DNA of 63,922 nucleotides, filler included, from Octopus bimaculoides (Eukaryota), in NCBI RefSeq assembly GCF_001194135.2. It is 4 parts of 4 records of this genome, joined end to end, with 100 filler letters (N's around TTAATTAATTAA, not from the genome) between each part and the next. Parts side by side here need not be neighbours in the genome. Positions count along the whole stretch, not along the records: positions 25,805 to 49,886 come from NC_068986.1; 3 more parts are not named here. One strand, 5' to 3'. Shown piece by piece: positions 17,927 to 49,434 of the stretch. Positions within the stretch are counted from its first letter, which is position 1; every line of letters begins with the position of its first letter. The translations under genes were made by a program, and so were the position numbers. The notes under the pieces are model-generated. The model did not search any database and was not told the origin of the DNA. It saw only the letters and a program-made list of their open reading frames with translations.

Positions 17927-17957
<31 letters not shown>

Positions 17958-23091: not shown

Positions 23092-23198
23092 CTGGTCACG
23101 TATTTCCTTAGCCTTTTCTGCTTTCTTTAGCTTTGTTGCATATTCTTGCGCATCTGGTAGACCCAGGTCAGCACTGATTTTTGTCAGAAACTTTAAAC
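23092..23198 (-). CDS. IFT88: IFT88 internal coding exon (phase 1 to 0): (C)LKFLTKISADLGLPDAQEYATKLKKAEKAKEIRDQ
   Basis: Strong acceptor (ttttttgttacag) and donor (CAG|gtaata); 107 nt = 2+35 codons. Peptide resembles the vertebrate IFT88 segment LRFLVRLCTDLGLKDAQEYARKLKRLEKMKEIREQ (recalled, not searched). Confidence 0.92.
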
Positions 23199-23379
23199 CT
23201 GTAACAAAAAAGACGAAGAGAAAATATGACACATATTCTTTTATAGGTTTCAGCCTCTAAAACACACACACACATGTATATAGTTCATAAATGAGATCAA
23301 GCTATTCTCTGTATAGAATACACTTAGTAGTACTCAAGAGATTTAAACTTGAGCGGATATAGAAGCAAATGTAGCGATA

Positions 23380-25171: not shown

Positions 25172-25249
<78 letters not shown>

Positions 25250-25704
25250 GTATTCCTCATGATCATCATCATGTGCTTCTTAAATGGCTTATAAACACCT
25301 TTCACACTGCAACTGTTTTCGTTCCAGCACACGATCTCAGATCAGGTCACTTGCTATGCAAGTACATCTCCATAATATATATATAGTATATATACATACA
25401 TATATATGCACATATATATATATATGTATATGAACATATACATATATACCTATACATATATCATCATCATCATCATCATTATCGTTTAACGTCCGCTTTC
25501 CATGCTAGCATGGGTTGGACGATTTGACTGAGGACTGGTGCAACCGGATGGCTACACCAGGCTCCAATCTAATTTGGCAGAGTTTCTACAGCTGGATGCC
25601 CTTCCTAACGCCAACCACTCAGAGAGTGTAGTGGGTGCTTTTACGTGTCACCCGCACGAAAACGGCCACGCTCGAAATGGTGTCTTTTATGTGCCACCTG
25701 CACA

Positions 25705-27167: not shown

Positions 27168-27364
27168 CATATACATACATACATATATAAATATATATAT
27201 ATATTTATATATTTATGTATGTACGCACACACATAGTTATGACTTTATATACGTATACACATATTTGTGCATATGTATATTCAATGTATATTCAAGCGTA
27301 TATACATATACACAAAAGCACACAAACACACACATGTATGTATGTATTTATGTATGTATATAGT

Positions 27365-27660
27365 AAGGGCACATGGCCCAGTGGTTAAGGTATTGCCCTC
27401 ACGGTAGCGAGATCGTGATTTCGTTTCCCAGACCTAGTGTTGCGTTGTGTTCTTGAGCAAAACTTCATTTCATGTTATTCTGCGATCATTTCAACATCTG
27501 ACGTGTAGCACAGTTGTGCACCTGCACAAACAATGTAGACAATGATAGATGGAGTGAGCCTATGTCAACGCAAACATTTGATCACTATAAGCAAATCATT
27601 TGTGTGGTTGTTGGGCAAAAGATTGCCGAACCCACATCTGTCGTCTAGAATCGGGAGAAT
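27365..27660 (+). mobile_element. SINE family D
   Basis: ggcccagtggttaagg head; body shared with 35995 and 55100. Confidence 0.75.
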
Positions 27661-28274
27661 CCCTTACAAATACGAGTGTGTGTGTGTGTGTGTGTATGTG
27701 TGTGTGCGTGTGTGTGTGTGCATACGTGTGTGCGCGTGTGTGTGTGTGCGTAGTGTGTGTGTGGGTGGGTGGGTGTACTCTAGTACACAAATTACCAGTT
27801 TATCTGATGAATTTATGCCTGAATATTTGTGCTATATCTTGCACCTAACTTTAAGGAGACAGGCAATGAATTTTGATGTATTTCACTAACAGTAATTTTT
27901 TTTTTTACCAACATGACATAAAGACTCTAGTTTTGAGAGGATTGAGTAGCCGATAGAAATAGATAGCAATAAACGACCGAGCTATGTTGAATGAAAGNNN
28001 NNNNNNNNNNNNNNNNNNNNNNNNNNNNNNNNNNNNNNNNNNNNNNNNNNNNNNNNNNNNNNNNNNNNNNNNNNNNNNNNNNNNNNNNNNNNNNNNNNNN
28101 NNNNNNNNNNNNNNNNNNNNNNNNNNNNNNNNNNNNNNNNNNNNNNNNNNNNNNNNNNNNNNNNNNNNNNNNNNNNNNNNNNNNNNNNNNNNNNNNNNNN
28201 NNNNNNNNNNNNNNNNNNNNNNNNNNNNNNNNNNNNNNNNNNNNNNNNNNNNNNNNNNNNNNNNNNNNNNNNNG

Positions 28275-29230
28275 AAAAGTAAAGTTGACCTCGGCGGGAC
28301 TTCAACCCAGAAGGGAAAGAGCCGGAAGAATTGCTCTGCCCCAGCATGGCTGCAGCCTCAAGGCTGAAGCGTATAAAAGAATGAAGTATTTTGTCCGATG
28401 TGCTCGTTGTCTTAAATGATAATAATAATACTTTCTACTATAAGCACACGACTCCGAATGTAAGGACAGACGAAATACTGCTAAGCATATTCTTTTCTAC
28501 TCTAAGCACAAGGCCTGAAATTTTTTGGGGAGGGGGCCAGTCGATTAGATCGACCCCAGTACCCAACTGGTACTTAATTTATCGGTCCCGAAAGGATGAA
28601 AAGCAAAGTGGACCTCGGCGGAATTTGAACTCAGAACGTAAAACTGCCAAGCATTTCGCCTGGCGTGTTAACGATTCTGCCAGCTTGCTGCTTTAATACT
28701 AATGGCTTTTGATTGAGGCAAAGGGCTCAACATTTTGAGGGTAAGGCATTAGTCAATGCCATCGACCACAGTACTTGAGTGGTACTTTATTTTATCGCTC
28801 CCGAAAGCATGAAATCGGCAAAAATCGAATATAAAGGTAAAGGGCCGAAACAAGTAGCGACTCTCTTTTTCCGGCTCTGGGACGACTCTGTTAGTTCACC
28901 GTCCTTTATATATATTTTTTATATTAATACAAAAGACAAACAATTACGAAAAACGGCGGAAAGTTGAGAAAACTAATTACAGTAGGTGGCTGGTAATTTA
29001 TTTCGTCGACACCCAAAGAATGAAAGTAAAGTTGAACTCAGCTGGATTTGAAACCAGAGCTTTGAAAGTTTAAAGAAATAACCTAATGCCTTTTGACTGA
29101 AGCTCTAACGATTCTACCAGCCAACCGTCCATTAATTAAAGGTTTCTAAATTAGGCACAAAATCAACAGTTTTGATCGTAAGGGGTAACGTAAGTTGTAA
29201 CTTTGTTTTATCGACCTCGGTGGGATGAAA
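28275..29230 (-). mobile_element. Cluster of decayed family A SINEs
   Basis: Repeated atcgacccc..ggtactt..tcccgaaaggatgaaa..gacctcggcggaatttgaactcag segments. Confidence 0.75.
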
Positions 29231-30181
29231 AACAAAGCTCACCCCAGAGGTGTGGAGCAAAATGTGTGGTCAGAGCATTCCCCAATACCAAATACCTTTT
29301 CCTCTTGGTATCAGTGCCGAGACTGCCGAAAGTAAGTGAGAACATTGGACTTTGTTCCAATCTCTCTATGTCCTCTGGGTAGCTGCTTTCTAGTGAAGTG
29401 TTTTACAAATAGTTTATCATCTAATTGGCTCACAAATTTGGAGCAGATTTACTCTTTAATGATCACCTCATTTTCTTTTTTCAAGCTCGTTGTAGTCAGA
29501 TACTGTATTCCACAGTCAAGGAAACACCATCTTTCGCAATATAACCTTTGCCGTGTTGTTTTATTTATTATTATTTCATTTTTTCGGGAGCTGATTTATA
29601 TCGAATGACTCCCTTGGATTAGAAGCGCCAGCAAATTTCTTCTCTTACAATATTACCAAAAATGTGTTTATGTTGCTTGAAGTGTCTTAGTGTCTGTTTA
29701 AATGTAATCATTTTCTCTCTTTTTGTTCAACGTTTCTTTTTTTCAAACACTTATTATTTTCAACATTTATATCAGTTGACTAGAACTTCCCGACCAGTGA
29801 AGAAATAGTTCCCTCCTTGTGTTTTTTAAATAAATAAGTTCTGTCAAAAGAATGAGGTGTACATATTGTGTTTTTCAATTTGTTAAGAATTTCAACGAAA
29901 GGAATTTTTATTTTATTCAAGTTAGTAAACTATGTTAATAGTTAAAGCCAAGAAACTGTGTAAGCATAAAGGTCAGTAAAAGGAAATGAAGAAAGAAAGG
30001 TTATGAAGTGGGGAAAGAAACGATGAGAAAGTTTACTGGATATAGGTTATTACAAGATCAAAGTGAAAACAATAGCTAAGCATTGTTCTTGGAAATGGAC
30101 TGACTGCTGCAATGTTTCATGTTAAAAAATGTCATTTGGCATTTATTTTACATTTTAAAGAAATGTGAGACTGGCATGTAT

Positions 30182-30936: not shown

Positions 30937-31346
30937 CAGAAAATTGAGTTAGAGTGCATGAGTATGTACGATGTGGCGAAAGTTGATCAATTGAGTACAA
31001 GTTAAGGTAAGTTAAAAAAGAAACCAAAAGAATAAAAGAAAAAAAACATCAGATAAAAAATTAAGAAACAAAAACAAAATCCAATCTGTTGCGTCAACAG
31101 CAACTTAGAGCAAAGTACGTATTTGTGGTGATGTAGGAGTGTAATATAACCACACAGCATCCATCTGAGATATTAACAGTGAATCAATAATGAAGTGATT
31201 TATCAGTAGCATGTGGTCAGTGTTCCATAAAAACCAACCGGTTACTTGACGCCGTAGTTCTTGTAGAGACTTGCTACCGAATAAAACTGGATTCTGTAGC
31301 TGTTTCTCTTAGCATTTGTGACTTCTTGTTCTAAGGATTTAATACC

Positions 31347-31410
31347 ATGTTCGTTAGTAATTCCTGCTCAGTGCCGATACAGTTAATCATCTTAGTGGCC
31401 ATTTCCGCAG
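31347..31410 (+). CDS. Ly6/uPAR (three-finger) gene coding exon 1: signal peptide MFVSNSCSVPIQLIILVAISA
   Basis: aataccATG context, 21 codons + 1 nt, phase-1 donor GCAG|gtaaac. Hydrophobic core QLIILVAISA; phase matches the acceptor at 38641. A phase-1 intron after the signal peptide is typical of Ly6 genes. Confidence 0.78.
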
Positions 31411-31614
31411 GTAAACAATATTTAAATATTCTTATTGACACAAGTTCTGTGTAAATGCACGCGTACCTTCCAAATATACGAACCTACATATATGTGCGCA
31501 CGCACACACACACGCACACTCACACACACGCATACACCACACATATATACATGTATGCATGTGTGTGTGTGCGTATGTATATAATACATATACTATAAAC
31601 TATACGTATATCTA

Positions 31615-31617
31615 TAG

Positions 31618-31708
<91 letters not shown>

Positions 31709-31740
31709 ATATATATATAATATACATATACTCTATATAT
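31615..31740. repeat. Long (TA)n microsatellite
   Basis: Directly visible. Confidence 0.95.
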
Positions 31741-31770
31741 ACTTTATGTATAAATATATCCTTACACACC

Positions 31771-32068
31771 CAGTGGTGCACTGGGTCTAAAAATATTGGT
31801 TGCCAGGGGACTAAGGTGGCCCACCCGCAACTACAAAGCTATCATCTAATCTTTTTTTGTTGTTGTTGTTAAAAATATTCTTTATAACTGTCTACAAACC
31901 CAGTCAGGCTGAAATAATTAATGCATTCTTCCAGGAGTGAATAAAAAAAAGTCTCAAACTTGAGGGGATGGGCCCCTAGATACTAACATAGACCCCTTTA
32001 TATAGATTCTAATGGCGCAGGGGCCACTTGCTATCGGGCAAGCTGGCAACCTGGCCAGTCCGCCATTG
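31771..32068. mobile_element. hAT-like MITE inserted in a CA microsatellite
   Basis: Termini cagtggtgcactgg / ccagtccgccattg are imperfect inverted repeats with CAGT(G)-type ends; TSD ambiguous. Confidence 0.5.
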
Positions 32069-33775
32069 CACACACACACACACGTATATGTATGCATCAT
32101 GTTTGTGTGTGTGTTTGTGTGTGTGTGTGTGCGCATGTGTGTGTGTGTGTGTGTGTGTGTATAGTCATACACAATCATGCGCATACATATAAAATACAAA
32201 CGCATACGCAGATACGCGAACGCCTATAAAGGTATGGCTAGATACGCTTTTCGTCTTTCACCTACTTTCTGTGCGTGTGTGTGTGTGTGTGTGTGTGTTT
32301 AAATATTGTTTTTATGTTGTTTAATATACCCGTATTCCTCTTTGTTACATACCACTGATCACGATCATGTTACATACCACTACCCTATTTTCATTCCACC
32401 TATGCAAATTACACTGTAAATGTGTTCTTCTCCCCCTTTTTTTGTATATATCTAAGTGTCTAGTTTGCCGAAAAGAAGTATGATGATTACTGATGATGCT
32501 TGTTGATATAGTGATACGTGTTCATAGTTCTCTTCTTTCCTTCAGGAAATCAGCCTTTTCTCTAAGGGCATGTCAGTTTTAGAGAAATAATTCTTGAGAT
32601 GGGTTCCCCTCCTTGTTTGAAATTAATCCTAATCGCTTCCAATTGATTGGTCTGCACTGCACCTTAATTTCAATAAAATTTACCTGGAATGTTATGTAAT
32701 GTAGCCATATTCGAAATCTGTTAGTTAAATACATGCCAGAAGAAAATCTTTCTTATTCCTCCTATCGCATTTCCATTTTGCGCGCAGGCACATAAGCACG
32801 TACGCAAATACACACACACGCACGCACGCACTGTTTTAACAAACAAAAAGTTGGTAGTTCGAAGAAGGCAACTGAATCGAATCTTTGTGCCATATTACAA
32901 CAAATTTCTAAATGGGCTTTCAATTTATGCTTGACACATACTTACACACACACACACACATATATATATACATACATACATACATACATAAGTTTGGCGT
33001 GATTAGAACTCTGAATATAAACTCTCATATCTTAAAGCACAAAATATATTTCTGTCGTTGTTCTACTGATTCTGGTCTAGATTGAGCATGATAATAAGCA
33101 TGAGCAGAACTAAATGAACTTACTATGGTGCATTTGAATGAAAATATTTTTACATTGTTACGGAAGCAAACGTTAGAACTTATTATATATATATATATAT
33201 ATAGAATCGAAAGACATCTATGGTTTTGTCCTATTATTATTCTTACTGTATTTGTACTACTGTATTTGTGTAACATTGTTCGTTTGTTTTTTCTTCCGTC
33301 CTTGTTTTTGTATACATTCGCTGATTTCTTCTAAGGAATCTAATGCTCTTAGCTTTGTTTTTCCTTGGGGCTGGACAGATTGGAGCAATATCGAAAATAA
33401 CCAGCTTAATGACTGACAAGCTCTTTGTCAGTCATTAAGAAAGTGCTTTGTGGGTTTTGAGTTGTATTGACTTTTATTTCTAGCAATACTGGTACTAATT
33501 CGCACCCTCTGACACTTTTGTGAACTCAATATATATATATATATANNNNNNNNNNNNNNNNNNNNNNNNNNNNNNNNNNNNNNNNNNNNNNNNNNNNNNN
33601 NNNNNNNNNNNNNNNNNNNNNNNNNNNNNNNNNNNNNNNNNNNNNNNNNNNNNNNNNNNNNNNNNNNNNNNNNNNNNNNNNNNNNNNNNNNNNNNNNNNN
33701 NNNNCTGTCCTTATTTGTTCCCTCTGTGTGTAGTCCCTTGTGGGCTGTAAAGAAATAAGAAATTGGAAGAAATGA

Positions 33776-34012
33776 AGGCGGCGAGCTGGCAGAAACGTTA
33801 GCAACGCCGGGCGAAATGCTTAACGGTATTTCGTCTGCCGCTACGTTCTGAGTTCAAATTCCGCCGAGGTCGAATTTGCCTTTCATCCTTTCGGGGTCGA
33901 TTAAATAAGTACCAGTTACGCACTGGGGTCGATATAATCGACTTAATCCGTTTGTCTGTCCTTATTTGTTCCCTCTGTGTGTAGTCCCTTGTGGGCTGTA
34001 AAGAAATAAGAA
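33776..34012 (+). mobile_element. Young full-length SINE family A
   Basis: aaggcggcgagctggcagaaacg A-box head, gttcaaattc B-box, 3' tail ..aaagaaataagaa; flanked by an attggaagaaatg direct repeat. Confidence 0.9.
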
Positions 34013-34508
34013 ATTGGAAGAAATGAAGGCTGGTTCTGCAAAATAGTTATTGTTATTGTATTAAGTCGTGGATGATTGTCGGGTGGTGCTGGACTATGAC
34101 AGCACCCCAGCCTCACTATCATGCTGATAATATTGTGAATGATTTAGGTTATCTCAAAACTGCAGAGGGAAAACACCAGTACAATTGGAACAATGTGCAT
34201 GCTTCTGCTTTGTTTATTTATTGATTTCTATTAATAATTTACTCCTTTTCCATCCATTTTCTTTTTACTGTTTGCTTACATAAATTTTCTATATGTGCTT
34301 TTTTTATTGAGTTATTATTATCCGCTATTTTTATTGTATTATTCTCAAATTTATACTTGATATACCTTGAAATATAGAAATATTACTTCGTACTATTCAG
34401 AGTATAATTTAAATATACAGGACACACCTTTGGCGTATTTCACGTCAAGCTTTATGGTTAAAAGGCGTGGATGTCAGGGACGTTAGTGAGGATTTGCGCA
34501 AATAAATA

Positions 34509-35780
34509 TTGGGTTGGCAACTAAGTTCCCGCCGCTTTTTAAAATTTTGGAATTTATTGCGTTTTAAATTTTGGATTCGAGAATTCTATTTTTGAATCAT
34601 TTTGGAATCTATTTTTTTCTCTTTAATTTTATTTAATTTTTGTTTATTTTCAGATCATTAAACCGGAATGTCAAGTTAAGAAAAACGAGCATTTTCGACA
34701 CCTCCTTCTTTTTGTTTTTAATCAAGGTTCTAAGGCTGCAAAAGCTGTTCACGACATTTGTGCTGTGTATGGAGAGGCTGCTATAGCTGAAAGAACCGCT
34801 TGTGATTGGTATGCCAAGTTCAAAAATGGAAATTTTGACCTCAAAGATGCACCTCGTTCTGGTCGTCCAGTTGAGATCGATGAAGAGAGATTAACCCAAA
34901 TTTTGCACGAAAATTCTCGTCAGACGACAAGGGAGCTGGCAGAGAAAATGGCATACTCCCACACTGCTATAGAGAAGCATCTTCACTCGATGGGAAAGGT
35001 TCAGAAGTATGGAGCTTGGGTTCCGCATGATTTAAGTGACTACAACAAAAATCAATGAGCCACAATCTCCGCTGGTTTGCTTACTCGTCACCGCTCAACT
35101 CATGGACATAAGCAACGATTTCTTTACCGATTCGTTACTGGCGACGAAAACTGGTGTCTGTACATCAATATGAAGCAGCATGTGGAATAGCTTAGCTCCG
35201 GTAAACAAGCGACACCGCGCGGGAAACAAGATCTTCATCCGCGTAAAACGATGTTGTGCGTATGGTGGGACTGGGAAGGGATTATCCATTACGAATTGCT
35301 TGAATGAAACTAAATTGTCAACGCGGAACTCTATGTTCAACAGATGGAACGACTCAACACGGCTATTCAAGAGAAAAGACCTAATCGGCAGCATGGAGTT
35401 CTGCTGCACTACAACGGCCGCTTTCCTATCGCCAATATGTCCAAGGAAGCCATTCAAACGCATGGCTGGGAAGTGTTGCCATACCCACCGTACTCTCCTG
35501 ATTTGGCACGAACGGATTTCCACCTCTTTCAATCTCTTTCAAATGCTATACGTAGAGTTTCGTTCAATACTGATGCAGAGTTGAGAGCTTGGTTGGATCA
35601 ATTTTTCCAGTCGAAACGGGTGATTTCTACCAACGAGGTATTGAAAATCTTGTTGAACGTTGGGAAGAAGTTGTAAACAAGGGTGAATACATTATTGATT
35701 AATTAGGTGTTATTTTTTATTAAACCTTTTAAAAAACTCAAATTTTAAAAAAAATGGTGGGAACTTAGTTGCCAACCCAT
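34509..35780 (+). mobile_element. Full-length mariner (1272 bp, mellifera-like TIR) with pseudogenised transposase
   Basis: TA-ttgggttggcaactaagttcc..ggaacttagttgccaaccca-TA; WVPHDL, VTGDENW, HPRKTMLCVWWD and YSPDLART motifs; start codon mutated (CCG at 34663) and several stops. Confidence 0.95.
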
Positions 35781-35994
35781 TAGTAATCTAAAAACTTCAA
35801 ACAATAGAACACTTGATACTGCGAGCTAGAAGAGAAATATAAGTAATGTAAGCTTGTGTGACTAAGTGGGAGGATCTGCAGAAGAGTGTTGTGTCATGTT
35901 TGTAACACTAGCTGATAGAAATCTGCATTAATATGACGCAATTTCAAGTTTAGAAAATGACATTTGTTGGTTTTTCTGTATACCATATGTTATT

Positions 35995-36184
35995 TGTAAA
36001 GGTGCATGGTCTCCTAATCAGGGTGTTTCACTCACGATCACGAGATCCTGGTTTCAACTCTTGGACTGGGTGGTGCTTTGTGTTCTTGAGCAAAATACCT
36101 TATCTTACGCTACTCTGAGTTCACTTCGACATCTGACACGTGGTACACTGTGCGCCTGTATAATCAATGTCGATTTGATTGATT

Positions 36185-36245
<61 letters not shown>

Positions 36246-36330
36246 AATGTACAGCATAAACATTTCATGACTATAAACAAATCCTTTATGTAGATTGTTC
36301 AGCAAAAAAATTGTAGGATCGTCTTTCACG
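35995..36330 (+). mobile_element. SINE family D with internal (GA)n
   Basis: Homologous to 27365-27660. Confidence 0.65.
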
Positions 36331-38640
36331 GACTACAAGTAACTACTACCATATGCTATTGTTGCCACCACTGATGTTGCCGTTGTTTTTGTTGTTGCTG
36401 TTGTTTTTGTCGATGTCATTGATGGTTGTGGGTTTGTTGCTGTCGTTGTCTGTTGTTACTGTTGATGTTTTTTGTTGTCAAGTTCAGAATCAGCCTCAAT
36501 CGAGTAGACCCGTGTTTAAAGGAACTCCACCCTTGACCATGTTGCTCGTCTTGTATATGCTGCGCTATATTACTCAACATGTTCTTTTTCTGTTACTTAC
36601 AGACGTTGTGACTGAGGGTGATTGTTGATTGCAATTACTAGCAAGTCGAACGACCATGAGTTTTCTCTCATTCACTCATCTTCATATTATATATTTAAGT
36701 ATATATAATTGATTGTGTATATACGTATCTGTTGTTTGGCCGTTGTTCAGTTCCTCATTCCAGTAAAGCAACGATTAAAAACATCTTAACTGGGAACACC
36801 TCCTTTTTATTCCTGATATGACGTATCTAGCTGGGTATTATCTTATTTGATCTGCCAGATTTTTAAAGAAAAAGGTAATGTATAGTTTTGGGGTGATATG
36901 GAGGCTGCTTGTGAGTGAATTTGGTAGGCAGGAACTGGGTGAAAGCTCATTTGATATATNNNNNNNNNNNNNNNNNNNNNNNNNNNNNNNNNNNNNNNNN
37001 NNNNNNNNNNNNNNNNNNNNNNNNNNNNNNNNNNNNNNNNNNNNNNNNNNNNNNNNNNNNNNNNNNNNNNTATATATATATATATATATATATATGCATA
37101 TAAATATTTTCAAAGAAAAGGTTCGCAGTTACTTTTGAGTTTTGGTTGTAGAGCTTTAATCGGACTGTAAATTACTTTGGTTTTCCAAATCTTATATACC
37201 TTTATTTGACTTCAGCTCGTAAGGTGAGCGATCTAGCTGCAAGGTAGGTGTGCTATAATAGTATATTTTGTGGTATATAAAAAAACCGTCTTTATGGATG
37301 TTTTGATTAGTTGTGCGGAAAATATGAGTTTTAAATAGAACAACGAGGAAGAGAAAGCGCTAATGATAAGAGCAAGATAACAAACACTTAAAGCGTGGGA
37401 GATAAAAGGAAGGACTAGTATGGAAACTATTTTTATTACGAAAGGGATTATTGATTCTTTATATGTTAATGTATATATAGATATACCGTAGTTACTTGAT
37501 ATTTGATTTTTATAGGAGTGCCTGTTACAGACGGGCAACAGACAAGCTTCATTCAGTGATTTATGTTAAAGAGCTTTGTTTAGTCTCACAATGTGGTTAA
37601 ATTTAATAATAACATCTAAACAATCAGTAATCCCTTTTTTGCCAGCCAGATAGTTTCTATATAGGTTTAACTGTAATACCAGGAAAAGTGTTTCTACTAT
37701 CCTTTCCTTTTTATGCGCACACTTTAAATGTTTGATTTCTTCCTTTCTTTCCTCTTTCCTTCCTCTACCACTCTTTATTGCAAAAGTTCTCTGAAACTCT
37801 TATTCCCCACTACACTATTGTATTATTCATTAAGACTTATTTATATACCACAAAAATATACTGTGGTACTTTACAGCGAAATTGTTTCAGACCCATAAAT
37901 GGCATTCCAACCCATATAAAAAAAAAAAAAAATTAAAAAAAAACTTACCCGTCAACGCAAGCGAGTGTTGTGGTACCGTGTTCTTGGTTACTATTTTAGG
38001 TGCCTGTGTGGTCACGAGCAGACATAGGCACTCTCTCGGCCCTCTCATCCCTGACCCAGCAGAGCATCGAATATGTGACAGCTGGAGGGTGGCACTAGTA
38101 CTAGGCTGGTACTCACCTGCTTCTCATTTTCAACCAAAGAACTGAAGCAAAGTGAAATGATGTACCCTACTCAAGGATTTTAACTAAGAATGTAAAAAGT
38201 AGTAACTAGATTGCACAATGCACTTTATCCGATGATCCGATTAATAGTATGTGTACGTATCTCTATGTGTGAGTGTGCGATTGCGTTTATGTGTGTGTTG
38301 GCACCGATCTTTTATTCTTTTTCCTTTAACTCCTGGGTTAATCTGTTATTAACACTAATTGATAGAATTATTTTTGATCACTGGATGTCAGGTATGTTCT
38401 TATCTTCATTTCATATGTACACTTTGGTACCGAGGTTGTGGGCTATTATACCTTTGACACATTTACATCTTTCATTCCTTCATTTCTTAAAACGTTCTAA
38501 ATCACATTATTAAACCACATTTCCAACAGCATATATCTTTTCATTGCTTCTTTAATCAATCATTTCAACCCATTTTCCCTTTTACAAAGTTTTGGAGAAA
38601 ATGTTCAGTTAATTTATCGACAGCAATTTCTAATTTACAG

Positions 38641-38792
38641 CGAACTCTCAAAGTCTAACGCCTAACAAGACGATTAGCTGTTATGCTTGTTCAACAGCTT
38701 TCAAGAAGTACTGGCAAACAAGCGACCCTTGTCTAAAAGGTTCTAAAACACTTCCGATTCAACAATGCACGGTTCAACAATATTACTGCCAG
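38641..38792 (+). CDS. Ly6/uPAR gene coding exon 2: (A)NSQSLTPNKTISCYACSTAFKKYWQTSDPCLKGSKTLPIQQCTVQQYYCQ
   Basis: Acceptor ttctaatttacag, donor CAG|gtaagg; 152 nt = 2+50 codons. Carries the xCYxC LU-domain start and five cysteines. Confidence 0.9.
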
Positions 38793-39160
38793 GTAAGGGA
38801 AGCATTTTTTAAAATCCGATCTTAGAGTAATTGCATTCTTTTTGAGATTTTTCCTGAAATTAAATAAATACCAGACATGTTTTGTTCGAGACAGAAATTG
38901 CAGCCGGTACTTTAAGTTATTGCAAGCTCTGTCTTTTTCTGATACCTCATACAATCGAATTGTTAGGAATTCTTCTGTATCTTCAGGATTATAAGCATTT
39001 CTTCCGTTAGCTTGTGTGTATAATCCGTGTGTGACAGCGACGACCGAAGCAATCTTCGCCTGCAGAATGTTTTCTCGTTGTTTCTTATGCTCCCTTCTCT
39101 ATACTCTATCTATATATATACACTTTTTTCTAAGCTCTCTTTACTTTTGGACATTACTTT

Positions 39161-39319
39161 CTAAGTGAATTAGAATTGTATCTTACCTCTGCAAGATTGC
39201 AAAAAAAATAGCAACTAATCGAGTGCTTCTTTGGCGCTAAGTTCGAAATCATGATACCAGGTTAACTGCCATTCCTTTTGCAATCTTGCAGAGGTAAGAG
39301 ACAATTCTTATTCACTTAG
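39161..39319. mobile_element. MITE with 44-bp TIRs
   Basis: ctaagtgaattagaattgtatcttacctctgcaagattgcaaaa and ttttgcaatcttgcagaggtaagagacaattcttattcacttag. Confidence 0.85.
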
Positions 39320-40146
39320 CTTTTTTTTTCACCATGCCTGTAAAAATTGAGTGATAATTCCTCTGGCTTCGGAGTTTCTATGACTCCTATTTTTAGCGAA
39401 GCTGGTGCTTCTTAGTGCCCAAATTATATATATTTTCATATATATTTATTAATTTTCTTATATGGTTTTTATGCTTGCGGCTTACTAATACACTAATATT
39501 ATTATTTCTTATGAATAATAATAATAGTAATAATAATAATAATAATGATGATGATGATGATAATGATAATGATANNNNNNNNNNNNNNNNNNNNNNNNNN
39601 NNNNNNNNNNNNNNNNNNNNNNNNNNNNNNNNNNNNNNNNNNNNNNNNNNNNNNNNNNNNNNNNNNNNNNNNNNNNNNNNNNNNNNNNNNNNNNNNNNNN
39701 NNNNNNNNNNNNNNNNNNNNNNNNNNNNNNNNNNNNNNNNNNNNNNNNNNNNNNNNNNNNNNNNNNATATATATATATATACAGCAAACTTTCTCAGATT
39801 ACATAGATTCAAAGAATTAGAGGGTAGAAGGCGTTACAAGCCCGACAGCTGTTTCTGAGTGCTCGAAGTTACTTCATAATGTTGGCAGATTTAGTGTATT
39901 AAAAATTTTCAGCCAGTAATGGAATCAAATAAACATTGGTAAAGTTGAATTTTTGGTTCTCCTTTACTATAATTATATTGGCCACCCTCTTCCTTAAATA
40001 TAACATACCTTGATACAGTAAACGCGTGTGCATAAAATAGCTACCTTGTGCAGTCTGAGCAATTCGCACACCCTACTCTACAGCAATAATAATCTTTTCA
40101 GGTAATGTGTGTTCACAACACATTCGATTCATTGTTGCAAGGGACA

Positions 40147-40745
40147 TTTGAGACACCGGTGTTTTGACTTTGTTGTGTCTCTTCAATCAAAAGACACGAT
40201 AACTATTCATTTATGGGATAATGAAGCAATAGTTTTTTATAATTTAATAAATTATCATGTGGACAGAGAACAGCAAGAATCAAAACGATGACTTACACTT
40301 TCATTCTTAATACGTTCCGGCAGATTTGAATGTGAATGTTAATCGCTGATGTATTTAGTCTTCGGTAAACATCTCCTTTTAGACAATGCGTGTTGACAAC
40401 ACACTTAATTCATTCGTATAAGGGATATTAGTGTTTCGACCTGGTTCTGTCACTTCAGTCAATGCCACCCTCAACAAAGAAACTAAACAAGAATGGTGGC
40501 TCTTGTTTATAGAGTTCAGCAAACAAATTATTTTTGATGCGTACTGATGTCTGTCAAACCAATAATAAATTACCATGTGCACAGAAAGCAGCGAGATTCA
40601 AAAGGCTGTCATATATATTCATTCTTAATACATTAATACAAATTTGAACGTGAATATAATTAACCACTGTTGTTTTGACTTAGTCGTGTCTCTTCAGTGA
40701 AAGCTACCGTCAGATCAATGAAACGAAACAAGAATGATGGTACTT
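40147..40745 (-). ncRNA. Three decayed minimal type I hammerhead ribozymes in a degenerate tandem repeat
   Basis: Copies at 40147-40191, 40423-40464 and 40659-40703; consensus CUGAAGA-GAC(N8)GUC-GAAA-CAC(N2)GUG-UC; each copy has different core mutations. Confidence 0.7.
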
Positions 40746-40910
40746 TTATATTAAAACGTTATTCAAATATTTGAAATGTTAGTCAACACGAATATTATAA
40801 TAAATTCTATTCTGTTCCCAATATTGAGTCATCCTATGAATAAATGTTCCGTTCTTTGTCTCAAAGTAACTTTAAAATAATAGCATCAGTTTAATATATA
40901 ACTATATATA

Positions 40911-41125
40911 AGGCGTCGATTTGTCAGAATCGTTAACACGCCGGGCGAAATGCTTAGCGGTATTTCGTCCGTCTTTAAGTTCTGAGTTGAAATTCCACTG
41001 TGGTCGACTTTGCCTTGCATCCATTCGGAGTCAATAAAATAAGTACCAGTTGAGCACTGGGGTCGATGTAATCGACCCACCCGCTCCTCCGAAATTGTTG
41101 GCCATGTGCCAAAATGTCAAGTCAA
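40911..41125 (+). mobile_element. SINE family A
   Basis: Full head and body. Confidence 0.85.
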
Positions 41126-41703
41126 TATATAACTATATATTACATAGTAGTAGATAAACTCTATAATATTCCCTAGATACTCTCTATAATATGCCCTAGA
41201 TACTCTCTATGTTATAAAGAGGTTATATATACGATTGTGTACACATATGCGTGCGTAAGTCATTTGTCACCAAGTAGTCGTTAATTGTCTTTGGAAGTGG
41301 AGATAATGTCAATAAATACCAAATTTATCATATACGGTGTTTATTATACTTGTACTTGTCTTTTTGTTCAACTGTACATGTCAATGGTCATTCTGAGTAG
41401 TTTCTTTCAGCTCATTTTCTTTTAAATTACAACAATAGAAACATAAACAGTACGTGATTGTAGGAACAGCGTGATATTGAAGCTAAATCTCTCCTACATC
41501 ACAACCCACCGTTTTAAAAGATAAGAGATGTTAGATAATGTATCTTAGCTACTCAAGTCTGAAAAATGATTAAAAATACAACAGATGGAATATTGTTTAT
41601 CTAACATTTACTGTAAAAGGGTATAAGATCTGCTTTGGAGCTAATACAACACACCACTACCACCACCATCACCACCACCACCACCACCACCACCGCCACC
41701 ACC

Positions 41704-41745
<42 letters not shown>

Positions 41746-41761
41746 GCTGCTNNNNNNNNNN

Positions 41762-41789
<28 letters not shown>

Positions 41790-41800
<11 letters not shown>

Positions 41801-41966
41801 TATGACGGGCTTCTTTCAGTTTCCGTCTACCAAATCCACTCACAAGGCTTTGGTCGGCCCAAGGCTATAGTAGAAGACACTTGCCCAAGGTGCCACGCAA
41901 TGGGAATGAAACCAGAACCGTGTGGGTGGTAAGCAAGCTACTTACCACACAGCCACTCCTGCGTCT
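41790..41966 (-). mobile_element. SINE family B, 5' half
   Basis: Reverse complement of the 42401-42574 copy. Confidence 0.85.
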
Positions 41967-42087
41967 AAATAATGATATTTTGTTAAAGTTATTTCTATAG
42001 ATCTTCTATAGAACTTATAGTCAGCACTTTTCGTATCCACACATCAGATGTAAACAGGCAATGTTATCGCAGATAAAACTGGGTAAT

Positions 42088-42134
42088 GAGTGTGTATGCC
42101 ATATTTCGGGGGTTGTCGCCCCTTCTTCAGCACT
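42088..42134 (-). ncRNA. Degenerate minimal hammerhead ribozyme
   Basis: GAGUG-CUGAAGA-AGGG(cgacaac)CCCC-GAAA-UAUG(g)CAUA-CA-CACUC; 5-bp stem I; cleavage-site U replaced by C. Confidence 0.6.
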
Positions 42135-42400
42135 CCTCTAACCCACTGTTGCCTACTACAAATCTTGAATGTTTACATACCAGCCCCAGGAATGCGTCTA
42201 ATATGTAAATTGGTATATCCAATAACTTAACACCGCTGTATGCGGTGGCTATATAAGCAATGTGTTTGGAGGCAATAGCGTGTTAGATGAGGGCTTGAAG
42301 CCCTCGATTTTTTCTAGTTTTTTTACCCAATATTTAGACGTTAATTTTGTAGCTTCAACTGCTTCAAAATTCGCCGTTACCATAAACAATCATATATATA

Positions 42401-42574
42401 TAGGCGTAGGAGCGGCTGTGCGGTAAGTAGCTTGCTTACCAACCACATGGTTCTGGGTTCAGTCCCACTGCGTGGCACCTTGGGCAAGTGTCTTCTACTA
42501 TAGCCTCGGACCGACCAAAGCCTTGTGAGTGAATTTGGTAGGCAGAAACTGAAAAGAACCCCGTCGTATATATA
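42401..42574 (+). mobile_element. SINE family B, 5' half
   Basis: taggcgtaggagcggctgtgcggtaagtagcttgc head through gtcgtatata, followed by a gap. Confidence 0.85.
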
Positions 42575-43594
42575 NNNNNNNNNNNNNNNNNNNNNNNNNN
42601 NNNNNNNNNNNNNNNNNNNNNNNNNNNNNNNNNNNNNNNNNNNNNNNNNNNNNNNNNNNNNNNNNNNNNNNNNNNNNNNNNNNNNNNNNNNNNNNNNNNN
42701 NNNNNNNNNNNNNNNNNNNNNNNNNNNNNNNNNNNNNNNNNNNNNNNNNNNNNNNNNNNNNNNNNNNNNNNNNNNNNNNNNNNNNNNNNNNNNNNNNNNN
42801 NNNNNNNNNNNNNNNNNNNNNNNNNNNNNNNNNNNNNNNNNNNNNNNNNNNNNNNNNNNNNNNNNNNNNNNNNNNNNNNNNNNNNNNNNNNNNNNNNNNN
42901 NNNNNNNNNNNNNNNNNNNNNNNNNNNNNNNNNNNNNNNNNNNNNNNNNNNNNNNNNNNNNNNNNNNNNNNNNNNNNNNNNNNNNNNNNNNNNNNNNNNN
43001 NNNNNNNNNNNNNNNNNNNNNNNNNNNNNNNNNNNNNNNNNNNNNNNNNNNNNNNNNNNNNNNNNNNNNNNNNNNNNNNNNNNNNNNNNNNNNNNNNNNN
43101 NNNNNNNNNNNNNNNNNNNNNNNNNNNNNNNNNNNNNNNNNNNNNNNNNNNNNNNNNNNNNNNNNNNNNNNNNNNNNNNNNNNNNNNNNNNNNNNTATAT
43201 ATATGAGTATATGCATATATATGTACATGTATGTACATACCTTCATCTACATGTATATATATAGATGCATATCTGGGTGCATGATGTTGCAAAGAAACAT
43301 GGACAAAATCATAAACAGGGTACAGAAAACACACAGGCCACATAGAGAACATTTCCTTCATCAGCTGATACCATTATAACACTGGCGTTTCGATGAGTTA
43401 GGGCAGGACGCATCGTTACAATGGCTCTTCCCACGGACACAAATTAAATTTGTTCCATGGAGGAATGTAGTGGCGGACAGAAAACAAGACAGGAAAACGA
43501 AATGGTGAAATAAACAAACAAAGAAGGCTATACAGCCAGACGTGAAAAAGTATGTGTATATTGAACGTTGTGAAGCACGAACTGGAATGAAACG

Positions 43595-44204
43595 GGACGA
43601 GAAAATGTGTCGATTCGCTGGGACTTCCCCGTTCATACCGAGAAAACTACAAAAGCTAATAAACCGGATATTATAATAAAAGATCAGACAATAAAGATGT
43701 GTTTATTAATTGACATGAGTATTCCTTGCGATCACAATAGAGCAGCGAAAGAATTTGACAAGATCAGTAAATTTAAAGACTTGCTAATAGAAATTGAAAA
43801 AATGTAGCATCTCAAGGCAAAAAATGCTTTCTAATTGATGTATCAATACCAGCAGATGACAACGTTTCCCTAAAAGAAATGGAGAAACTTTCAAAATACA
43901 AAGACCTGGAAATAGAGGTAACTCGAATGTGGAATCTAAAAACAGAAACAATTCCTATCATAGTAGGTGCTTTAGGTTTAATAAAAAAATATTCAGACAT
44001 ATACATAGAAAAAACACCAAGACTTACAAATATATATAACATACAGAAAATTGCACTACTGGGCACTGCACACATCCTACGCAAAACACTTTCAATACAG
44101 TAACCATAAGAGCATCACAGCAAACCACAGCACATACCCAAGGCACACAGAGCTGCGCTCGGTAGTGAAGTGAAAACATGTTATAAAAATAAAACTACTT
44201 AACA

Positions 44205-44210
<6 letters not shown>
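43595..44210 (+). mobile_element. RLE-type (R4/Dong-like) LINE 3' end made of two overlapping subfamily fragments, ending in (TAA)n
   Basis: ENVSIRWDFPVHTEKTTKANKPDIII..CLLIDMSIP.. then KCFLIDVSIPADDNVSLKEMEKLSKYKDLEIE..IIVGALG..LLGTAHILRKTLSIQ*; 3' UTR then (TAA)n. Confidence 0.88.
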
Positions 44211-44268
<58 letters not shown>

Positions 44269-44289
44269 AGAAGAAGAAGAAGAAGAAGG

Positions 44290-44710
44290 GCGTAATGATC
44301 TGACTTAGGTACAAGGCCAGTAATTTTAACGGGAAGAAGCCAGTCGATACCATCAACATAGCATTTGACTAGCACATGTTATATCAACCACGGAAGGATG
44401 AACGGCAAAGCGGCGCTCGATAGTACTTGAATAGAATATAAAGAACCTGGACAAATATCCCAAGGCGTTTTTCCGACGCTCTAATAATTCTGACAGCTCG
44501 TCACCTTTAATGGCTTCTGATTTGGGCACATGGTCAGCAATTTTAATGGGAAGGTGTTAGTCGATATCATCGACCCTAGCACTGATCTGGAACTTTATTT
44601 TATCGACCTGAAAAGAAGGAAACGCAAAGTTGATCCTAATGGGATTTGAACTAAATACTGCAGAGCATATTTTCCCTGACATTCAACCAATTTGACCAAC
44701 TGGTTGCCTT
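44290..44710 (-). mobile_element. Two decayed family A SINEs
   Basis: Family A body motifs in reverse. Confidence 0.65.
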
Positions 44711-45559
44711 TGTTAATAATCATAATAACATATAAAATGTTTAACCAATCAATTTCATGCGGAATACTTTGTACTGAATCTTACCTTTGCTGAAGTGAAA
44801 TCAAAAATAGTAAATAATTAATCATAATTTGATCCATATTGCTTAGAACGTTTAACACCGGCTAATAACTATTGAATACTATCGATTAGACTATTAGAAA
44901 TTAAACAAATCAATAACAACCAGTGGTTATAAACCCATGTGAGAGTTGCCACTGGTTGATCTATTACGGTCGATAATGCTTTTGTTACTGTTACCTGTGT
45001 TGTTGTACCAAATTACTGATTGAATCAACTCTTACTGACTCACCTAACCTAGATGTTGGTAGGTACCATGAAGAGGTTTACCAGCAAAAAGAGCGGAGAC
45101 AATACAAAAGTAATAAGTGCTAATTCGAACGACTATACTCCATCTCACATATCTGTGGCCTTGTGTCATTTTAATATATCATTTTATGTATATATGTGTA
45201 TCGGTAACCATCTTCTCTTTGCAGTTCAATTCTTCTGGGGTTAACTTGTGGTCGATTCAATCAAGTATACCTGCTCCTTTTTAAATATTAAATTCTGATT
45301 CAGTAATAATGGCCTGTAATAATTGGTGTATTGAAAACTGTAAGCAAAGGTATAGAGAAATGGTTGAAAGAGATTGAATAGAATGTTCTGTAGAGCTACT
45401 ATAGAAAGTTAACCTCTAAAGGACAGGAAAGATCATCGGGTAGGGAGGGGTCTAAGTGCTTAAAAGACTGTTGAAAGCAAGTAGATACCTAAATGTTACA
45501 GGTAGTAACCCGCTTCCTACATAAATGTTGTCAGGAACAAGACCGAATCTGCGTCAAAT

Positions 45560-45624
<65 letters not shown>

Positions 45625-45973
45625 ATAATAATAATAAATAATAATAATAATAATAACAATAATGAAAAAAATAATTTCTAACTTAGGCATAATGCTAGAA
45701 ATTTTAAGGGGAGGGGAGGTTAATTGGTGCAATCGACTCTAGTACGTGTTTAATTTTATCCACCACTGAGCAATGGAAAGCATGGTGAACGCAGAGCGTA
45801 AAAATCCGAAACAACCAACGTATGGCATTTTCCCCGATGCACTTATGGTTTTGAATAAATAACTTAATGGTTACTTATTCAGTGAATAAAAGTTTCGTGG
45901 TCATTGCTCTTATTTTTATTTAACGTTTTTTGATAAACATTTAAAAAATTAAATTGCATAAACTATATTTCAG

Positions 45974-46213
45974 GTGAAGACGAGCAGTATGTTTAAGAGG
46001 ATTACGAAAATAACTCGCGAATGTGTCGACAGCTGTATACCTGGATGTAAAAGGTATCTCTTTGGTGTATTAAAAGTGGACTGTACCATGTGCTGTAACA
46101 CGACTAACTGTAATTATGGAAACAATGGGGAGAGACTCAGAATTCCTGTGACACACATTATATGTGTCGTTATAGTTTCAATGATAACAAACTATCGAAT
46201 GTTGAGGACTTAA
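45974..46213 (+). CDS. Ly6/uPAR gene terminal exon: VKTSSMFKRITKITRECVDSCIPGCKRYLFGVLKVDCTMCCNTTNCNYGNNGERLRIPVTHIICVVIVSMITNYRMLRT*
   Basis: Acceptor tatatttcag, phase 0 matching exon 2. Contains the CCxxxxCN LU-domain signature, a small-residue omega-like region (NYGNNG) and a hydrophobic tail suggesting a GPI signal. Confidence 0.92.
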   Translation: MKTSSMFKRITKITRECVDSCIPGCKRYLFGVLKVDCTMCCNTTNCNYGNNGERLRIPVTHIICVVIVSMITNYRMLRT

Positions 46214-46273: not shown

Positions 46274-46344
46274 AATAAATTGTTTTCTAACTTAATATAA
46301 TGATTGGAATTAATAATTGTGGAATACCAGAAGTGCCAAATAAA
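46274..46344 (+). promoter_or_regulatory. Candidate polyadenylation signals of the Ly6 gene (AATAAA at 46274 and 46339)
   Basis: Two AATAAA hexamers 60-130 nt after the stop codon; AT-rich context makes chance occurrence plausible. Confidence 0.4.
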
Positions 46345-46596: not shown

Positions 46597-46622
46597 NNNN
46601 NNNNNNATATATATATATGTAG

Positions 46623-47608: not shown

Positions 47609-47886
47609 NNNNNNNNNNNNNNNNNNNNNNNNNNNNNNNNNNNNNNNNNNNNNNNNNNNNNNNNNNNNNNNNNNNNNNNNNNNNNNNNNNNNNNNNNNNN
47701 NNNNNNNNNNNNNNNNNNNNNNNNNNNNNNNNNNNNNNNNNNNNNNNNNNNNNNNNNNNNNNNNNNNNNNNNNNNNNNNNNNNNNNNNNNNNNNNNNNNN
47801 NNNNNNNNNNNNNNNNNNNNNNNNNNNNNNNNNNNNNNNNNNNNNNNNNNNNNNNNNNNNNNNNNNNNNNNNNNNNNNNNNNNNNN

Positions 47887-47940
<54 letters not shown>

Positions 47941-48248
47941 TGCATACACATATACACATATAAACTCATGCCCTTCATGCTATCCACACGAAATCAGACA
48001 CTATCTGTATCATACGATACGACATGAACCAACCATCACCACAAAAGGCATGACTTGCTCACCAAATGAAACTCATGCATTATACGACTAATAAATGAAC
48101 TGCACGCTCTTAGTCACTTGCACAGCATTTCCCATGATAATGGCTACACTCCCACTGTCACCTTGGGCAAGTATCGTTTTCTATAGCCTCTGGCCGACCA
48201 AAGTCTTGTGAGTGGATTTGTTAGGCAGAAACTGAAAGAAACTCGTAG

Positions 48249-48286
<38 letters not shown>

Positions 48287-48660
48287 NNNNNNNNNNNNNN
48301 NNNNNNNNNNNNNNNNNNNNNNNNNNNNNNNNNNNNNNNNNNNNNNNNNNNNNNNNNNNNNNNNNNNNNNNNNNNNNNNNNNNNNNNNNNNNNNNNNNNN
48401 NNNNNNNNNNNNNNNNNNNNNNNNNNNNNNNNNNNNNNNNNNNNNNNNNNNNNNNNNNNNNNNNNNNNNNNNNNNNNNNNNNNNNNNNNNNNNNNNNNNN
48501 NNNNNNNNNNNNNNNNNNNNNNNNNNNNNNNNNNNNNNNNNNNNNNNNNNNNNNNNNNNNNNNNNNNNNNNNNNNNNNNNNNNNNNNNNNNNNNNNNNNN
48601 NNNNNNNNNNNNNNNNNNNNNNNNNNNNNNNNNNNNNNNNNNNNNNNNNNNNNNNNNTAT

Positions 48661-49434
48661 GTAAAAAGTTCGTTATAGGTATGTATAAGATAAAATCTTA
48701 AATAAAACGCTATAAACAATTATAAAAATGGAGAAGAGATGTTAAAAGTTCAAAATATAATTTAATATCCACATACGAACGTTTCAAAGGGTAATACAAC
48801 TATGTAAGAAAAACAATTATAATAATAATTAAAGTTATGTATTGCCATTCTCGTCAGTGTAAAGAATTTAAGGAAAAACATCAAAAAAAAATATTAGCAA
48901 AAAAATCTTGAAGGAAAAAAAACAAATAAGGTAATACGAACAATCTGACCGAATATTTACAAATAACTTGTAAAAGGGAAAAAGAGAAATGAAAACACGG
49001 ACATGTCACTGTATGTTCGAGTCTATCTGTGCAAAAAATGTTTATATATTTTTTTTCACAGATGGACTCGAATATACATTGATATGTCTCTGTTTTCATT
49101 TCTCTCCCTTTTTTCCTTTTACAAGTTATTTGTAAATATCCGGTCAGATTGTCCGTATTACCCTATTTGTTTTTTCCTTCTGGATTTTTTTTGTGAATAT
49201 TTTTTTTAATGTTTTCCTTTAAATTCTTTACACTGACAAGAATGGCAATACATAACTTTAATTATTATTATTACAATTGCTTTTTCTTACATATTTGTAT
49301 TGCCATTTGAAACGTTCGTATATAGGTATTAAATTATATTTTGAACTTTTAACATCTCTTCTCCAGTTTTATAATTGTTTATAGTGTTTTATATAAGATT
49401 TTAACTTATACATACCTATAACGAACTTTTTTAC
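48661..49434. repeat. Long near-perfect palindrome (~380 bp arms, ~10 nt loop at 49039-49048)
   Basis: gtaaaaagttcgttataggtatgtataag..atctgtg.aaaaaa | tttttt.cacagat..cttatacatacctataacgaactttttac; arms visibly diverged by roughly 10%. Confidence 0.95.

Follow-up and report, generated by a model that had tools for sequence, protein, structure and literature searches.

Do three candidate exons scattered along a stretch of the Octopus bimaculoides genome encode a genuine protein of the Ly6/uPAR (LU) superfamily and, if so, is that protein new, how is it built and what might it do? The stretch, called the window throughout, is the whole of the DNA analysed here, 63,922 nucleotides (nt) made up of four joined parts of assembly GCF_001194135.2; the exons fall between positions 31347 and 46213, in the part taken from NC_068986.1 (25,805 to 49,886, below the sequence piece). 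A preliminary description of this DNA had proposed a novel 12-cysteine LU protein, reconstructed from the three exons and perhaps acting on nicotinic receptors. Our answer is that the three exons encode a genuine small three-finger (Ly6/uPAR) protein, and that the locus is the already annotated O. bimaculoides gene LOC106873633. We consider it likely that this annotated three-exon LU gene specifies a six-disulfide protein with a LYPD6-type framework, a member of an uncharacterised family, which would be tethered by glycosylphosphatidylinositol (GPI) and would tune a receptor or channel.

An annotated three-exon gene and its three-finger product

Joining 31347-31410, 38641-38792 and 45974-46213, exons of 64, 152 and 240 nt (the last including the stop codon TAA), yields one open frame of 453 nt plus stop, that is, 151 codons for a precursor whose full sequence is MFVSNSCSVPIQLIILVAISAANSQSLTPNKTISCYACSTAFKKYWQTSDPCLKGSKTLPIQQCTVQQYYCQVKTSSMFKRITKITRECVDSCIPGCKRYLFGVLKVDCTMCCNTTNCNYGNNGERLRIPVTHIICVVIVSMITNYRMLRT. 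The start ATG has an A at -3 and is preceded by an in-frame TAA 15 nt upstream, at 31332-31334. All coding features lie on the plus strand, and both introns are of the GT..AG type, with the junctions CAG/gtaaac and ttacag/CG for the first and CAG/gtaagg and ttcag/GTG for the second. Coding exon 1 (31347..31410) holds the start codon and the signal peptide up to the first base of codon 22 (residues 1-21 being complete), and closes with a phase-1 GT donor at 31411 that is conserved in O. sinensis. Intron 1 (31411..38640; 7230 nt, phase 1) is collinear with the 9571-nt first intron of that species. Coding exon 2 (38641..38792) contributes the end of the signal peptide, a 12-residue N-terminal stretch bearing the sequon NKT, finger I (C35, C38, C52), C64 and C71, and closes in phase 0 after Q72; it is followed by intron 2 (38793..45973; 7181 nt, phase 0), whose O. 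sinensis counterpart is gap-free and 11841 nt long. The LU part of exon 3 (45974..46114, residues 73-119) encodes basic finger II, C89, C93 and finger III, with the codons of an extra finger-III pair of cysteines at 46046-46048 (C97) and 46082-46084 (C109), and closes with the motif CC-x4-CN (C112, C113, C118, N119) and the sequon NTT. The rest of exon 3 (46115..46213) holds the C-terminal tail, residues 120-151, a putative GPI-attachment signal, together with the stop codon. Further along the same strand, two AATAAA hexamers (46274-46279 and 46339-46344), both in sequence conserved with O. sinensis, are candidate polyadenylation signals.

The three-exon protein of 151 residues, with its cysteines at 35, 38, 52, 64, 71, 89, 93, 97, 109, 112, 113 and 118, its sequons, its basic finger II and its tail, can all be read directly from the DNA, just as the preliminary description had it; two further cysteines, C7 and C136, lie within the signal peptide and the tail. 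That description was also right that the track of open reading frames (ORFs) is limited to exon 3, the mechanical ORF list giving this exon only, as the GTG-started ORF 45974-46213. In the published plan of LU genes (PMC6600238), a signal-peptide exon is followed by two exons for the domain; the flanking introns are in phase 1, and an internal one lies at finger II. Three coding exons with a phase-1 intron 1 match that plan, while the internal intron is in phase 0 and, coming after Q72, interrupts finger II at its base rather than at its tip (F79-K80), a minor departure. The exon boundary one residue after Cys5 is common to the octopus gene, its paralogue and a Patella gene.

Over its full length the product is 100% identical to RefSeq XP_014776566.1 (uncharacterized protein LOC106873633 isoform X1), a match far beyond what chance would produce. 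The same protein stands in UniProt as A0A0L8H0I8, a 'Snake toxin/toxin-like domain-containing protein', and in a EukProt entry, and the sequence piece is identical to O. bimaculoides chromosome CM046606.1 (GCA_001194135.2), gaps included. The words 'novel' and 'reconstructed' have to be given up, as an identical protein is already public and already labelled snake-toxin-like. We found no literature on LOC106873633, on cephalopod or molluscan LU or LYPD6 proteins, or on the 12-cysteine family described below.

The comparison with O. sinensis speaks to whether the frame is real. Its orthologue, XP_036359704.1, has 153 residues and is 92% identical; three exons and four splice sites correspond between the two genes, and the protein keeps every cysteine, both sequons and the tail. 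A 6-nt insertion in the O. sinensis coding sequence is in frame, and the indels in the neighbouring introns are not multiples of three. Coding sequence is about 95% identical between the two Octopus species, as against 88-92% in aligned intron blocks, and the synonymous (dS) and non-synonymous (dN) rates are 0.089 and 0.037 (dN/dS 0.42). Since O. sinensis preserves the frame, the splice sites and every cysteine, an artefact or a pseudogene can be ruled out.

The protein bears the LU signature ISCYAC...CCNTTNCN, with an N-terminal LxCxxC and a C-terminal CCxxxxCN, and has the ten canonical LU cysteines (35, 38, 52, 64, 71, 89, 93, 112, 113 and 118) together with N119. AlphaFold2, given an 87-sequence alignment, folds it into three fingers with a mean predicted local distance difference test (pLDDT) score of 84 and values of 88-96 over residues 31-120; strands span 34-41, 61-63, 70-78, 81-90, 96-100 and 106-113, and helices occur only in the signal peptide and the tail. 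Searched against the PDB with Foldseek, the model retrieved LU proteins, three-finger toxins or TGF-beta-receptor-type ectodomains in all 50 matches listed. Among these, LYPD6 had the lowest root-mean-square deviation (2.8 Å over 94 columns; query-normalised template-modelling score 0.42) and LYPD6B, whose 3.2 Å was likewise among the lowest deviations, the highest query-normalised template-modelling score (0.43). Model and structural matches thus bear out the preliminary description of a single LU domain behind a signal peptide, and the failure to form three fingers that it named as refuting did not arise.

RefSeq also holds an isoform X2 of 131 residues, in which exon 1 is replaced, so that the protein begins MS/NSQSL and has no signal peptide; its alternative first exon was not located in the window. 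Without a signal peptide this form would not enter the secretory pathway, and it is probably a minor or non-productive transcript.

Protein ends, cysteine framework and family

How would such a protein be held at the cell surface? At the N-terminus a hydrophobic core (residues 9-21; Kyte-Doolittle hydropathy 2.8), an AlphaFold2 helix (11-22) and the small-residue site ISAA/NS are in place, with signal-peptide cleavage predicted at about A22/N23, and the sequons follow at residues 30 (NKT) and 114 (NTT). Beyond N119, the tail consists of YGNNG, small residues with a candidate omega site, the 9-residue spacer ERLRIPVTH, the hydrophobic stretch IICVVIVSMIT (residues 134-144; hydropathy 3.05) and NYRMLRT. 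Of the 35 relatives whose tails are complete, 34 follow the same plan. A standard transmembrane helix would need a longer hydrophobic run, and the tail is laid out like a GPI-attachment signal, so that the mature domain is most likely tethered to the plasma membrane. Of the preliminary description's hydrophobic tail followed by NYRMLRT, the tail is certainly present; the closing NYRMLRT is not unusual, a short run of polar or basic residues being found at the end of several relatives too.

The tail bears directly on whether the protein might instead be secreted and toxin-like, for example a salivary-gland venom component, without any membrane tether. The three-finger fold is that of snake toxins, and the UniProt label is snake-toxin-like. 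Yet the GPI-typical tail is conserved, also in those 34 relatives, which come from non-venomous animals; the gene is single, shows no tandem expansion and has just one paralogue, a distant one; and the diversifying selection that venom genes typically undergo leaves no mark in a dN/dS of 0.42. We regard a secreted toxin as extremely unlikely.

Turning to the disulfides of the domain, we predict four core bonds (C35-C71, C64-C89, C93-C112 and C113-C118), the common one in finger I (C38-C52) and one in finger III (C97-C109), a pairing that we derive from homology with LYPD6 and from the joint loss of C97 and C109. In LYPD6 and LYPD6B (PDB 6GBI, 6IB6 and 6ZSO; Pfam PF16975, UPAR_LY6_2), the six solved bonds are the four invariant ones plus Cys6-Cys15 in loop I and Cys61-Cys72 in loop III; Lynx2 too has six disulfides, the extra ones being found in loops I and III (PMC7582953). 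A review terms the loop-3 bond of LYPD6 'apotypic' (PMC6600238). The extra finger-III disulfide suggested in the preliminary description holds up as a prediction: C97 and C109 align with Cys61 and Cys72 of LYPD6, and two relatives (P0044 and P0081) lack both while keeping the other ten cysteines, which supports their pairing. As a novelty, in contrast, the two extra cysteines do not stand. The predicted octopus bonds map onto the six solved bonds of LYPD6, so the count of twelve represents a known framework, and 12-cysteine LU proteins with loop-I and loop-III bonds are already published in LYPD6, LYPD6B and Lynx2.

The framework is shared by a conserved, uncharacterised family of many protostome phyla and one echinoderm, to which the octopus gene belongs. 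An exhaustive HMMER search of 1.84 billion representative sequences found 83 relatives at E<1e-3, the best being 30-39% identical. Those looked up come from land, freshwater and marine gastropods, bivalves, bryozoans, a nemertean, the annelid Capitella, Priapulus, krill, amphipods, decapods and a sea cucumber, besides the second octopus gene LOC106883984; no insect member occurs among the relatives whose names were looked up. Nearly all are named 'uncharacterized', a few PSCA-like (with 'prostate stem cell antigen' as the annotation of some snail relatives) and one LYPD6. All twelve cysteines from C35 to C118, R87 and N119 are invariant in a 37-sequence alignment, and 74 of 87 sequences keep all twelve cysteines. 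The family consensus runs C-x-V-E-R-x-x-V-x-G-x4-I-x-R-x-C-x3-C in its first half and continues x-Y-G-C-R-x2-G-F-G-x-T-x3-C-T-S-C-C-x4-C-N. The main deviation of the octopus protein lies at the tip of finger II, which reads F-K-R in place of x-G-x; this departure is the 'basic finger' of the preliminary description, and finger II (72-88) as a whole has five K/R against one E. A word-indexed protein search with the single sequence recovered the octopus protein itself only, and its profile version only uncharacterised crustacean and snail relatives without informative names. The sole match of the single-sequence PDB search, CagM, was spurious, and a family profile was needed in its place.

The paralogue LOC106883984 encodes 145 residues, is 39% identical and has all twelve cysteines. 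It lies on another chromosome (CM046610.1; L003 1001-26599), follows the exon plan of LOC106873633 except for a first intron of about 24 kb, and has orthologues in O. sinensis and O. vulgaris.

How close, then, is this family to LYPD6? Human LYPD6 (6GBI, 6IB6) is the best PDB match of the 37-sequence profile (E 0.0045), with all twelve cysteines aligned, and hhalign pairs the family with a vertebrate LYPD6 alignment over the whole domain at a probability of 91% (E 1e-6). Both are single LU domains whose twelve cysteines correspond one to one, including the extra finger-III pair, and both combine a signal peptide with a C-terminal hydrophobic tail, putatively of GPI type in octopus. Among the relatives, PF16975, which every vertebrate LYPD6 carries, matched 1 of 37 (E 0.0049); Toxin_TOLIP was found at E<0.01 in only 12 of 37, and QVR gave a weak match in 3 of 37.

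Several observations weigh against the reading of a tethered protein on the LYPD6 framework. Only genome-derived gene calls carry the octopus protein, and no transcript or expression data were seen. No Pfam LU model (UPAR_LY6, Toxin_TOLIP, QVR or CD59) reaches its gathering score for it, so the Pfam scan envisaged in the preliminary description came back without an LU assignment; in the single-sequence scan, Toxin_TOLIP scored 14.3 bits against a cut-off of 21.2 and QVR 11.7 against 27.3, and the LYPD6 model PF16975 gave no match at E<=10. Within the PDB, the 87-sequence profile ranks PSCA first (E 2.8e-5), ahead of LYPD6 (2.4e-4) and LYPD6B (5.5e-3), and Lynx1 is the top Foldseek match by E-value (3e-4) among the 50 listed; these two rankings indicate that the likeness to LYPD6 lies mainly in the cysteine framework. 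The domain introns of a fish LYPD6 fall at PKG/TRYC and HQV/CSSCC, as against YC(Q/K)/V in phase 0 in the octopus gene. At the protein ends, the signal peptide has no basic n-region, and the hydrophobic run of the tail is short, at 11-14 residues, with seven mixed residues after it, two of them Arg.

Beyond these points, the octopus protein differs from LYPD6 in several respects. Identity is only about 20%, and the spacing is C-x3-C-x3-C-x11-C where LYPD6 has C-x5-C-x4-C-x10-C. LYPD6 has an N-terminal extension of about 25 residues (with a conserved STTPxPGGFKC), the octopus protein 12 residues before C35; the linker to the GPI site is about 19 residues in LYPD6 (PMC8494132) as against about 3-6 residues from N119 to the candidate omega site. 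No helix is predicted in finger III of the octopus protein, and the domain introns differ in both position and phase: YC(Q/K)/V marks the single domain intron in the octopus gene, its paralogue and the Patella gene, and an orthology test against one fish LYPD6 found no shared intron position. Because PSCA scores better, the extension and linker are absent and the domain introns differ, we file the protein as an LU protein with a LYPD6-type cysteine framework and not as a LYPD6 orthologue.

Other LU proteins offer partial parallels. Lynx2 (LYPD1) and the starfish protein Lystar5 are also six-disulfide LU proteins, but the first extra loop-III cysteine of Lynx2 comes 10 residues after Cys7, as against 3 in octopus and 4 in LYPD6 (PMC7582953), and Lynx2 was not among the PDB profile matches up to E=10. 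PSCA and Lynx1 are GPI-anchored LU proteins sharing the pattern LxCYxC...CCxxxxCN; they differ in having 10 cysteines, without the C97/C109 pair. Drosophila quiver/sleepless and the insect Ly6 proteins (Pfam QVR) are, like the octopus protein, protostome single-LU proteins, and are GPI-anchored, as it is predicted to be, but they have a 10-cysteine framework.

Possible modes of action

What might such a protein do? On our preferred reading, the precursor would lose its signal peptide, form its six disulfides and be N-glycosylated in the endoplasmic reticulum, where the tail would be exchanged for a GPI anchor. The plasma membrane would then carry, on its outer leaflet, a basic, N-glycosylated three-finger domain of about 100 residues, whose fingers might engage, in cis, the ectodomain of a nearby membrane receptor or channel and tune the activity of that partner. 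This proposed mode of action follows that of known GPI-anchored LU proteins. For LYPD6 itself, action has been reported both on LRP6, in Wnt signalling, and on nicotinic acetylcholine receptors (nAChRs) (PMC8494132), and each of these targets suggests a more specific role.

One such role, which the preliminary description had raised as worth testing, is that of a prototoxin in the manner of Lynx1 or sleepless, modulating nicotinic receptors and possibly the nAChR-derived chemotactile receptors of the suckers. LYPD6, which shares the 12-cysteine framework, is reported to be a negative allosteric modulator of alpha3beta4 and alpha7 nAChRs (PMC8494132). The starfish protein Lystar5, Lynx2-like and an invertebrate nAChR modulator, inhibits alpha4beta2 nAChR as Lynx2 does (PMC9410279), and sleepless modulates nAChR and Shaker (PMC6600238). 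The Foldseek rank of Lynx1 among the matches listed and the basic finger II also fit. However, conservation does not extend to the residues that LYPD6 uses in published models, the targets of LU proteins are highly varied (PMC6600238), and the literature on the gene or its family members gave no expression, co-expression or binding data. The family is, moreover, far older and wider than cephalopod chemotactile receptors, so a role specific to these receptors could only be a late add-on, and the link between them and the octopus protein is pure conjecture. Overall, we judge a nicotinic prototoxin to be unlikely. A more elaborate version would make the protein the protostome counterpart of LYPD6- and Lynx2-type prototoxins, co-opted as an accessory subunit for the tuning of cephalopod chemotactile receptors or of neuronal nAChRs, with a lineage-specific basic finger II in which K-R replaces the conserved glycine of the family; this we hold to be very improbable.

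The other target of LYPD6 suggests a Wnt role, in which the raft-anchored protein would bind the LRP5/6 (arrow) ectodomain and promote LRP5/6 phosphorylation. LYPD6 enhances Wnt/beta-catenin signalling via LRP6 in fish, frog and mammalian cells (PMC8494132, PMC6600238). The cysteine framework and the profile similarity to LYPD6 would agree with such a role, and the wide conservation of the family among bilaterians would suit developmental signalling. Against it stand the lack of a PF16975 match, the different introns, the absence of both the N-terminal extension and the linker of about 19 residues, and the diverged fingers of the two octopus paralogues. The mature octopus protein is also without any N-x-I/V tripeptide, the type of motif that Zhao et al. 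2018 reportedly identified as the LRP6-binding element of LYPD6. We think a Wnt role distinctly unlikely.

A tethered LU protein need not modulate a receptor at all. It could have a non-neuronal, epithelial or housekeeping role like that of Drosophila boudin, crooked and coiled, which are required for septate-junction assembly and work by trafficking or organising junction proteins instead of modulating receptors. Going by the coverage of a review, junction proteins are a main class of protostome LU proteins alongside quiver/sleepless (PMC6600238), and the family's presence in crustaceans and many other protostomes would be in keeping with a role of this kind. Yet boudin, crooked and coiled have 10 cysteines, the QVR model reaches only the 11.7 bits given above, and insects are missing among the relatives looked up by name. 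We doubt an epithelial role about as much as the Wnt role, and prefer the more general reading of a tethered protein that tunes a receptor or channel.

The surroundings of the gene and its significance

Could the assembly conceal part of the gene? Five runs of N lie inside it, all of them intronic, the nearest 783 nt from exon 2: two in intron 1 (33546-33704 and 36960-37070) and three in intron 2 (39575-39766, 41752-41761 and 42575-43195). The orthologous O. sinensis locus (L002, CM016864.1) contains no N, and BLASTN blocks flanking every gap keep their order and orientation there. The gap at 33546-33704 falls within an unaligned stretch, 33203-34160, that corresponds to O. sinensis 12969-14745; those at 36960-37070, 39575-39766 and 41752-41761 lie opposite 17655-18104, 22702-23289 and 25243-25680, respectively; and 42575-43195 falls within the unaligned stretch 42403-44184, corresponding to 26106-29274. 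When 87 family proteins were searched by tblastn, they matched only the three exons in both loci, with no hidden or extra LU exons and no tandem paralogues. The reading frame is independent of the gaps, and nothing coding is hidden in them.

Five gaps of the sequence piece, 36960-37070, 39575-39766, 41752-41761, 46597-46606 and 47609-47886, each adjoin a microsatellite of the (TA)n, (CA)n, (AAT)n or (ACT)n type, the usual source of such breaks, which makes them look like assembly failures at simple repeats rather than missing unique sequence; no microsatellite array is listed next to the remaining gaps. In length, the O. sinensis introns exceed their O. bimaculoides counterparts by 2.3 and 4.7 kb, the stretches concerned including L002 20160-22326 and 26106-29274. 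Just after exon 2, O. sinensis has a stretch of about 2.2 kb without a counterpart in the window, which could be an insertion in that species or sequence collapsed in the O. bimaculoides assembly.

The introns and flanks also hold remnants of mobile elements. A decayed mariner/Mos1-type transposase remnant lies in intron 1 (34765-35676, plus strand); its stretch 34765-35058 matches HTH_48/HTH_32, and 35344-35676 is a DDE-like ORF. Upstream of the gene, a second mariner-type fragment (26401-26667, plus strand) matches Transposase_1 weakly. Inverted pairs of dispersed repeats occur at 41807-41971 / 42397-42561 and at 48663-48813 / 49281-49431, with 48156-48299 also among these repeats. The arms of the two pairs measure about 150-165 nt, are 89% and 93% complementary and stand 425 and 467 nt apart. 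The sequence piece holds further related copies, as does the O. sinensis locus at several positions, and these repeats are probably elements resembling short interspersed nuclear elements or miniature inverted-repeat transposable elements. Another short dispersed family (33804-33942, 40938-41076 and 28495-28703, thus both introns and the upstream region), two copies of which are 86% alike, likewise has multiple copies in the O. sinensis locus. Most of the long 'repeats' returned by the repeat search were artefacts of N runs and were discarded. Rfam and tRNA scans of the sequence piece gave no match. The next called gene downstream encodes a 273-residue homeodomain protein (PF00046) on the opposite strand, about 8.4 kb past the stop codon and beyond the sequence piece (minus strand, 33300-34867 in the coordinates of its own locus, L001).

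As a discovery the gene carries little weight, its model, its toxin-like label and the six-disulfide framework all being public already, and the modest value of the present analysis is one of classification. LOC106873633 and its paralogue LOC106883984 are reasonable candidates for studies of accessory proteins of cephalopod nicotinic and chemotactile receptors, and likewise for studies of Wnt co-receptor modulation in lophotrochozoans. For the family as a whole, the conservation of all twelve cysteines suggests that the LU type with a loop-III disulfide is ancient in bilaterians and not a vertebrate speciality.

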